64,000 nt of DNA from positions 1 to 64,000 of the IMG/VR virus record IMGVR_UViG_3300048924_000191; one strand, written 5' to 3'. The notes under the pieces are model-generated. The model was not told the origin of the DNA and did not search any database. It worked only from the letters and a program-made list of their open reading frames with translations. This document shows, one piece after another, positions 33,370 to 33,660 of this stretch. Numbering within the stretch: the first letter of the stretch is position 1; every line of letters begins with the position of its first letter. A program made the position numbers and the translations under genes.

Positions 33370-33660
33370 TTATGTTGCAGGGTCTGCGTAGAAAGATCCG
33401 AAGAACTCTCGCTGAAGAACATCCTGAGCGTCTCGACATTTCATCGCATCGTAAAACCAAGAACTATCACCCCAGTCCATGTGTCCGATAGTCCCCACAT
33501 TGAAGTAAGGTTTACCGACGTAGAACAGGATCTTCTCTTCCTTGATCTTCGCTTGCTGCTCAGCCCACCACGTTTCCTTGTAGATGGGCTTGACCACCTC
33601 ATTTCGCGACATGTTGCCATGCAGCATCCGAAGAGCGGTGGTGAGACTTCCCCTAAACAT
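33370..33660 (-). CDS. small protein with EF-Tu G1-like peptide
   Basis: KPYFNVGTIGHMDWG versus EF-Tu [15 protein letters not shown]; 8-nt stop/start overlap with the upstream ORF. Confidence 0.6.
   Translation of the reverse strand: MFRGSLTTALRMLHGNMSRNEVVKPIYKETWWAEQQAKIKEEKILFYVGKPYFNVGTIGHMDWGDSSWFYDAMKCRDAQDVLQREFFGSFYADPAT

Follow-up and report, generated by a model that had tools for sequence, protein, structure and literature searches.

A small protein of an uncultured phiKZ-like jumbo phage carries an internal segment resembling residues 3-23 of EF-Tu

The window analysed here, the whole 64,000-nucleotide stretch at positions 1 to 64,000 of IMG/VR record IMGVR_UViG_3300048924_000191, belongs to an uncultured, divergent phiKZ-like jumbo phage. 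Its nvRNAP beta-like gene (36626-38314, minus strand) matches phrog_2943 with an E-value of 5e-116, and the best GenBank relative of this gene, in Pseudomonas phage pPa_SNUABM_DT01 (DT01), is 36% identical. No near-identical DNA was found among GenBank phages; window DNA is also present in root, rhizosphere and plant metagenomes and within IMG/VR contigs of 116 kb and 243 kb, whereas a look for RNA runs yielded none with useful coverage of the locus. The locus around p96, a small open reading frame of 96 amino acids, contains the following features:

33326-33363, no strand: GC-rich hairpin of 17 bp, between p96 and a convergent gene (32887-33318, plus strand)
33370-33660, minus strand: p96, 96 aa, with its stop codon at 33370-33372 and five orthologues
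33469-33537, minus strand: EF-Tu(3-23)-like segment, EKILFYVGKPYFNVGTIGHMDWG, p96 residues 42-64
33556-33588, minus strand: PIYKETWWAEQ block, the second near-invariant block among the orthologues (columns P25-Q35)
33653-33662, minus strand: junction CTATGTTTAG, in which a YV-stop overlaps an MF-start
33653-33835, minus strand: 60-aa ORF between the TTM gene and p96, with a conserved CGKS and the C-terminus NDPIRPLRYV
33828-34472, minus strand: CYTH/triphosphate-tunnel (TTM)-like protein, 214 aa, coupled to the small ORFs downstream

The start codon of p96 overlaps the stop codon of the upstream ORF by 8 nucleotides (ATGTTTAG, 33653-33660), and the gene is closed by the 17-bp hairpin, a counterpart of which is also found in related genomes. 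Both features had been described in an earlier, sequence-only reading of this DNA, which considered the gene translationally coupled and real, and the comparison with relatives bears this out. Five orthologues were found in phiKZ-like metagenomic phages (P0002-P0005 and P0010, in L002, L011, L010, L004 and L013). The 8-nucleotide overlap is kept in all six genomes (the window and the five relatives), as is an identical gene order: a 368-aa protein, nvRNAP, a protein of ~630 aa, TTM and the small ORF, followed by convergent genes including RuvC-like and DUF7208 genes. Because the MF/YRGS start is kept in the orthologues, the product is taken to be the 96-aa form rather than the 85-aa call P0001. 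A tblastn search with p96 and the 60-aa ORF revealed no paralogue of either in the window, and the p96 locus gave no Rfam or tRNA match.

Selection on p96 was estimated by the method of Nei and Gojobori (NG86). Synonymous differences are saturated (pS 0.58-0.86), with pN at 0.11-0.38 in the core and 0.34-0.84 in the tail, and within the motif pN is 0 among the forms that read HVD. The string V-G-T-I-G-H-x-D is invariant in the orthologues, and synonymous changes occur in all seven of its invariant codons; the sequence-only reading had made its case depend in part on conservation of the motif in homologues, and the motif is conserved. Between genomes whose nvRNAP is 90% and whose TTM-like protein is ~70% identical, p96 is ~50% identical, which marks it as a fast-evolving protein with a frozen motif. 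Judged from these comparisons, p96 is a genuine, translationally coupled small phage protein under purifying selection. As a minor observation, P0003, P0004, P0005 and P0010 all end in ..PY, as does an unrelated ORF of 92 aa located after the TTM gene of Ralstonia phage RsoM3USA (L009:4039-4317); this common ending may be a coincidence or a shared C-terminal signal.

p96 consists of a fast-evolving, lineage-specific N-terminal part, the EF-Tu-like segment, and a variable tail. In the N-terminal part, PIYKETWW, A33 and Q35 are invariant in the orthologues, and this PIYKETWWAEQ block has no counterpart in EF-Tu. The EF-Tu-like segment contains the 15-mer KPYFNVGTIGHMDWG (p96 residues 50-64, 33469-33513), which is identical to the EF-Tu consensus at 11 of 15 positions, exactly as first noticed. 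The likeness extends further upstream, through E42-K43 and F46, to give EK(IL)F...KP..NVGTIGH.D.G, the counterpart of EF-Tu residues 3-23; in a joint alignment, EK..F.R.(K/R) of p96 lines up with EF-Tu residues 3-9. The two proteins are identical at N13, V14, G15, T16, I17, G18, H19, D21 and G23, and the copied stretch comprises EF-Tu strand beta-1 and the first half of the G1/P-loop. The back-translated core, AAYGTNGGNACNATHGGNCAYNNNGAY, matched once in the window and not at all in 100 shuffles.

Profile comparisons point to the same protein. When the PDB was searched with the p96 family profile, EF-Tu accounted for 59 of the 60 matches listed (E-values 6e-4 to 0.16), and hhalign aligned the p96 family with EF-Tu N-termini at 96% probability and an E-value of 4e-9 over 16 columns only. 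The alignable similarity between p96 and EF-Tu is thus confined to 16-23 residues. p96 lacks the Walker A pattern GxxxxGK[ST]: it has GHMDWGDS, so that GKTT of EF-Tu is replaced by GDSS, and the forms in the orthologues include GHVDYDLT. None of the elements G2-G5 (the switch I Thr, DxxG, NKxD) was found after the motif, where only ~30 poorly conserved residues follow, and none of the seven family members matched Pfam, including GTP_EFTU (PF00009), even at an E-value of 10. Relative to EF-Tu, then, p96 is without Lys24 and Thr25, G2-G5, and domains II and III, comprises only 96 amino acids, and carries the segment internally, behind an unrelated N-terminal part of 40 residues. On its sequence, p96 cannot be a GTPase, as the earlier reading had already argued from the missing KT and the missing remainder of the G domain.

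In contrast to the catalytic residues, those that set translational GTPases apart are kept in p96, namely His19 and the solvent-exposed Asp21 that faces the sarcin-ricin loop (SRL). p96 has the corresponding G-H-x-D signature, and its H60 and D62 do not vary among the six orthologues or among 15 phage mini-proteins. We consider the likeness to be specific to EF-Tu, and the segment is probably descended from the EF-Tu N-terminus; at the least, its sequence closely copies EF-Tu residues 3-23.

The possibility that p96 holds a captured fragment of tuf, also raised in the sequence-only reading, was examined by nucleotide comparison. Third positions agree with tuf at only 2-7 of 9-14 codons. This low agreement, together with the synonymous variation in all motif codons, led us to reject both a DNA or RNA element and a recent capture of tuf. 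The capture proposal thus survives in part: the segment may plausibly have come from the N-terminus of tuf, as graded intermediates exist (see below), but a DNA trace of recent capture is absent.

The sequence-only reading had proposed a search for the motif in other small phage proteins, and it does recur across phages. The segment is carried by the Erwinia jumbo phages Wellington (gp216), Kwan and pEa_SNUABM_11 and their IMG/VR relatives, by Pseudomonas jumbo phage HRDY3 (in an unannotated ORF), by Shewanella phage 1/4 (gp184), by the Vibrio phages henriette (phrog_27465) and Va2, and by mini-proteins of ~70 aa encoded in the nin region of lambdoid contigs (L029/L034/L036). Larger carriers are jumbo-phage proteins of 164-212 aa (P0136, P0139, P0142, P0144 and P0145). 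The position of the segment within the carrier protein differs between phages. When 15 phage sequences were aligned with EF-Tu, V, G, T, G, H and D were invariant, and Lys24 and Thr25 were mostly altered (GKP, GKQ, GRT, GMS, GLH, GDS). The lambdoid nin-region minis mostly keep GKT; since it is intact in some of them, nucleotide binding is not lost in every case. Glu takes the place of Asp in two Wellington-like relatives (P0140 and P0143).

These proteins form a graded series that leads from p96 to recognisable EF-Tu fragments. At one end, henriette gp52 (59 aa) matches EF-Tu fragments with E-values of 1e-9 to 1e-11 in a search of 5.8e9 proteins, and the L029 nin-region mini matches phrog_27465 at 5e-14; judged by sequence, homology to the EF-Tu N-terminus is unambiguous for henriette gp52 and for the nin-region minis. 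The phrog_27465 HMM reaches p96 with an E-value of 0.01, and five of the seven family members score ~0.01, over 21 residues only. The orthologue P0004 is identical to henriette gp52 at 15 of 19 positions, and the two have the derived YGKP in common (GHVDYGKP). A second bridge runs through Wellington gp216, which p96 matches by BLASTP at 2e-7 over 39 aa. GTP_EFTU was found in 99 of the 100 ESM Atlas neighbours listed for gp216 (score 0.95), and relatives of gp216 keep GM(S/K)PLTAAII, which is helix A of EF-Tu. We define here a 'DWG' module family (Wellington gp216-like) by a stretch of ~40 aa with a Trp, hLhxF/Y and NVGTIGHxD(W/Y). p96 has all of these elements, and profile A8 retrieves Wellington-like, L023-like and P0011-like proteins with E-values of 1e-22 to 1e-5. 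The ~40-aa module (W..hLhxF/Y..NVGTIGHxDWG), which p96 has in common with proteins of small and middle size in other jumbo phages, grades into the plain EF-Tu N-terminal minis of phrog_27465.

This series bears on the alternative that the EF-Tu likeness is convergent or due to chance, the strand and G-H-x-D being an ordinary element of an orphan small fold. The short span of the similarity and the lack of a Pfam match would fit such an origin, as would the ESM Atlas neighbours of p96 itself, which are not EF-Tu. We nevertheless consider convergence unlikely: the PDB matches listed are almost all EF-Tu, the hhalign probability is high, the motif did not appear in shuffles, and the series ends in unambiguous EF-Tu N-terminal homologues and includes helix A (LTAAI) in the Wellington-like members. 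The Atlas neighbours of p96, TseH/DUF3750, were rejected as relatives; they score 0.87-0.88, below the 0.9 mark of reliability, and p96 has no conserved Cys.

The carriers resemble p96 to different degrees. The phrog_27465 proteins (henriette 12B8 gp52; L029/L034/L036) match p96 in being small phage proteins centred on this EF-Tu segment; however, their segment is N-terminal and runs through helix A, and their tails and genomic context differ. The Wellington gp216 family and the L023-like and P0011-like proteins share with p96 the ~40-aa module, jumbo genomes of 230-250 kb and the replacement of the P-loop Lys and Thr, but differ in their N- and C-terminal parts and have no adjoining TTM gene. 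Of these, the Wellington-like proteins keep helix A (PLTAAII), which p96 does not, and the L023-like and P0011-like proteins are 164-212 aa long with extra domains. P0011 itself (L012) is an N-terminally cut member of a family of 183-206 aa (P0136, P0142) in which the module is C-terminal, and it lies on a 2.4-kb contig near an immunity-type gene of the SUKH/SMI1_KNR4 kind. The HRDY3 ORF (L001:2995-3345, record 210272-210622) falls in a 250-nt gap without a gene in the GenBank record; its GTG start overlaps the upstream stop, and its product begins (M)NGKPHINVGTVGHIDWG.

The Va2 protein annotated 'elongation factor Tu' (L014:1492-2079, 195 aa) is also a phage fragment of the EF-Tu N-terminus with an altered P-loop, in which Lys is replaced by Arg (GRT). 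It copies EF-Tu residues 1 to ~65, including EEKERGITV. Unlike p96, it therefore covers switch I, the stretch that Lit and the type IV Thoeris caspase cleave, and its C-terminal part is an unrelated fusion. Its sequence makes the Va2 protein a candidate decoy for proteases and a case separate from p96.

Our literature search found no study of phage EF-Tu fragments or decoys, or of a phage protein copying the EF-Tu N-terminus. PHROGs lists part of the set as a family without assigned function, and some records are labelled 'EF-Tu'. p96 belongs to a catalogued but uncharacterised kind of protein, and following it up could well reveal a new mechanism. The closest analogy in print is gp247 of Caulobacter phage Colossus, a truncated EF-Ts of ~100 aa proposed to modulate translation (PMC3556154). 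Both are phage fragments of a host elongation-cycle factor, but gp247 derives from subdomain N of EF-Ts and is not homologous to p96, and its role is a proposal only.

What is known of the EF-Tu loop suggests where a copy of it might act. Asp21, a residue found specifically in translational GTPases, abuts the sarcin-ricin loop, and ribosome-stimulated GTP hydrolysis requires it (PMC5084732). In free EF-Tu the side chain of Asp21 is exposed, and the residue is ADP-ribosylated by TreTu, a Salmonella T6SS Rhs toxin whose recognition of folded EF-Tu-GTP relies on helix D and switch I (PMC9825190). Bacterial conflict thus has a known target in the exact loop that p96 copies, although TreTu and TriTu are a toxin/immunity pair rather than a mimic, and TriTu blocks the active site of the toxin. 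More broadly, EF-Tu is a hub of phage-host conflict: it is a target or a tool of Lit, type IV Thoeris, Avs7, Q-beta replicase and TreTu. We know of no phage link for TreTu/TriTu.

Four EF-Tu-directed systems were considered as targets of a p96 decoy and rejected. Doc modifies EF-Tu at T382, and Lit cuts at G59-I60; both sites lie outside residues 3-23, and the relevance that the sequence-only reading had given to these two systems was not upheld. The same holds for type IV Thoeris, whose caspase cuts EF-Tu after R45 and R59 (10.1101/2024.10.24.620036), and for Avs7, which uses EF-Tu domains II-III, Lit acting in switch I (PMC13581612). The overlap of the segment with the elf18 epitope had also been pointed out. 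Although this phage comes from root metagenomes, we judged the plant receptor EFR irrelevant because the segment is internal in p96 and is also present in marine Vibrio and Shewanella phages.

The structure of p96 alone could not be predicted with confidence. The AF2 monomer has a pLDDT of 50.6, with the motif region below 50, and the ESM pLDDT is 0.37; the AF2 value leaves no usable fold. Such a low-confidence monomer is consistent with a protein that folds on a partner. A prediction of the TTM-like protein, E. coli EF-Tu and p96 as a complex scored 0.00, which by the tool's own statement is no answer.

Our preferred reading of p96, held tentatively and at somewhat less than an even chance, is that it mimics the G1 face of EF-Tu and competes for a reader of that face. 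p96 would probably fold only upon binding its partner, and would then present the EF-Tu G1 signature (His19/Asp21) as a tight-binding pseudo-substrate or competitor. One of the two most concrete candidate readers is an effector directed at the EF-Tu P-loop, of the TreTu type that ADP-ribosylates Asp21; the other is the ribosomal sarcin-ricin loop. Several considerations count against this reading. Because beta-1 is the buried central strand in EF-Tu, an isolated copy need not show the same surface. Because TreTu needs folded EF-Tu-GTP, a short mimic may not engage such an enzyme. Because EF-Tu is extremely abundant, a simple stoichiometric decoy is implausible. The short alignable span, the lack of a GTP_EFTU match in Pfam, the Glu of P0140 and P0143 and the intact GKT of some lambdoid minis also weigh against it.

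The recurrence of the segment in many unrelated phages suggests host mimicry that has not been studied. That N-V-G-T-I-G-H-x-D is always kept in these phages and Lys/Thr usually lost points to a selected function. We speculate, with a good deal more doubt than assent, that these proteins form a widespread and undescribed class built on a portable EF-Tu G1-signature module (beta-1 and G-H-x-D, with Lys/Thr usually removed) that would engage readers of the P-loop face, either to neutralise immune or toxin effectors directed at the P-loop, for example Asp21 ADP-ribosyltransferases, or to dock on the SRL and tune translation while infection proceeds. If the module does neutralise an EF-Tu-directed effector or bind the ribosomal GTPase centre, it would represent a new principle of counter-defence or takeover and a minimal probe for that site. 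Several carriers are cultured phages, namely Erwinia phages Wellington and Kwan, Vibrio phage henriette, Shewanella phage 1/4 and Pseudomonas phage HRDY3, which makes the question directly testable.

The neighbouring TTM-like protein offers another possible context for p96. It matches phrog_14791 with an E-value of 2e-24, and its DT01 homologue is annotated as CthTTM-like; Pfam and PDB sequence searches with it were negative. Its AF2 model (pLDDT 65) consists mostly of beta strands, and the top Foldseek matches in the PDB were NE1496, AtTTM3, ThTPase and Pfu CYTH, with E-values of about 2e-3 and a probability of 0.99. Glu, Arg and Lys are invariant at alternate strand positions among its homologues. 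The model thus supports assignment of 33828-34472 to the CYTH/TTM family with its eight-stranded tunnel fold. The protein is conserved in a subset of phiKZ-like phages, beside nvRNAP subunit genes. Homologues in Burkholderia phage FLC9 and Ralstonia phage RsoM3USA have long C-terminal extensions, which were rejected as p96-like because they are acidic low-complexity tails.

p96 could be an accessory or regulatory subunit of this triphosphatase; the GHxD loop would then be a relic that binds phosphate or metal at the tunnel, and its resemblance to EF-Tu would be incidental to what p96 does. The start/stop overlap joins p96 to the TTM gene, directly or via the 60-aa ORF, in six of six genomes, the TTM fold of the neighbour is supported, and P-loop-like loops in general bind phosphate. 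However, the module occurs without an adjacent TTM gene in Wellington-like phages, in HRDY3, and in the L023-like proteins, P0011-like proteins and phrog_27465 minis, which weakens this reading, and no partner of this kind accompanies the TTM homologues of DT01, FLC9 and RsoM3USA. The complex prediction spoke neither for nor against it. On balance, a role as a TTM subunit seems improbable.

p96 might also act on EF-Tu itself, inserting its beta-1/G1 strand into a translational GTPase (nascent or cleaved EF-Tu without its N-terminal fragment) to yield a dead or hijacked factor, by a dominant-negative effect or by complementation. It is predicted to be disordered alone and holds exactly the central strand of the G-domain sheet; in trypsin-nicked EF-Tu, fragment 1-44 stays bound to the remaining protein, and short chains of EF-Tu of this sort are found in PDB entries 2hcj and 5i4r. 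But EF-Tu, when intact, offers no free position for another strand, the phage needs the translation apparatus of its host, and the prediction with E. coli EF-Tu gave no signal, a result that counts as no answer. We regard strand insertion as quite unlikely, and competition for a reader of the G1 face remains the reading we prefer.

The 60-aa ORF between the TTM gene and p96 is present in four of the six genomes (the window, L002, L011 and L013) and cleanly missing from L004 and L010, which have a single junction and no cassette. It has no significant family or PDB match. In the window it is flanked by a direct repeat (CTATGTTTAR), formed by CTATGTTTAG and the near-copy CTATGTTTAA at 33828-33837. 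Because the nvRNAP and TTM trees require at least two gain or loss events, the 60-aa ORF looks like a recombination cassette, which may have been gained or lost at the repeated stop/start junction.

The identical YATGT(T/A)TAR junction at every boundary might instead reflect programmed +1 frameshifting at GTT-TAG, which would join the TTM-like protein, the 60-aa ORF and p96 and make p96 a C-terminal extension of TTM. This is very improbable, because every junction keeps its ATG despite changes in the overlapping codon (TAT, CAT), as expected of a start codon but not of a slip site; in addition, the MF/MY N-termini are conserved, and there is no known slippery heptamer. Least probable of all is a degenerate P-loop NTPase split between the 60-aa ORF, which would carry Walker A (GGRNCGKS), and p96, which would carry a Walker-B-like hhhhD, since the weak matches to AAA_14 (E 0.17) and terminase (E 0.064) stand against a first Gly of the putative Walker A that is not conserved, a profile that finds nothing P-loop-like in the PDB, and the absence of the cassette from two genomes that retain p96. 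The 60-aa ORF was accordingly dropped as a Walker A fragment, its PDB profile matches being only zinc-finger noise.

Further upstream, between the nvRNAP subunit and the TTM gene, lies a gene for a protein of 654 aa (34636-36600, minus strand). Its PHROG matches are weak, with E-values of about 1e-3, and it contains a long Arg/Asp/Ser/Gly-rich stretch of low complexity (RRRRDEDDRDDDRRDD..SRDRGDRRGDR..).
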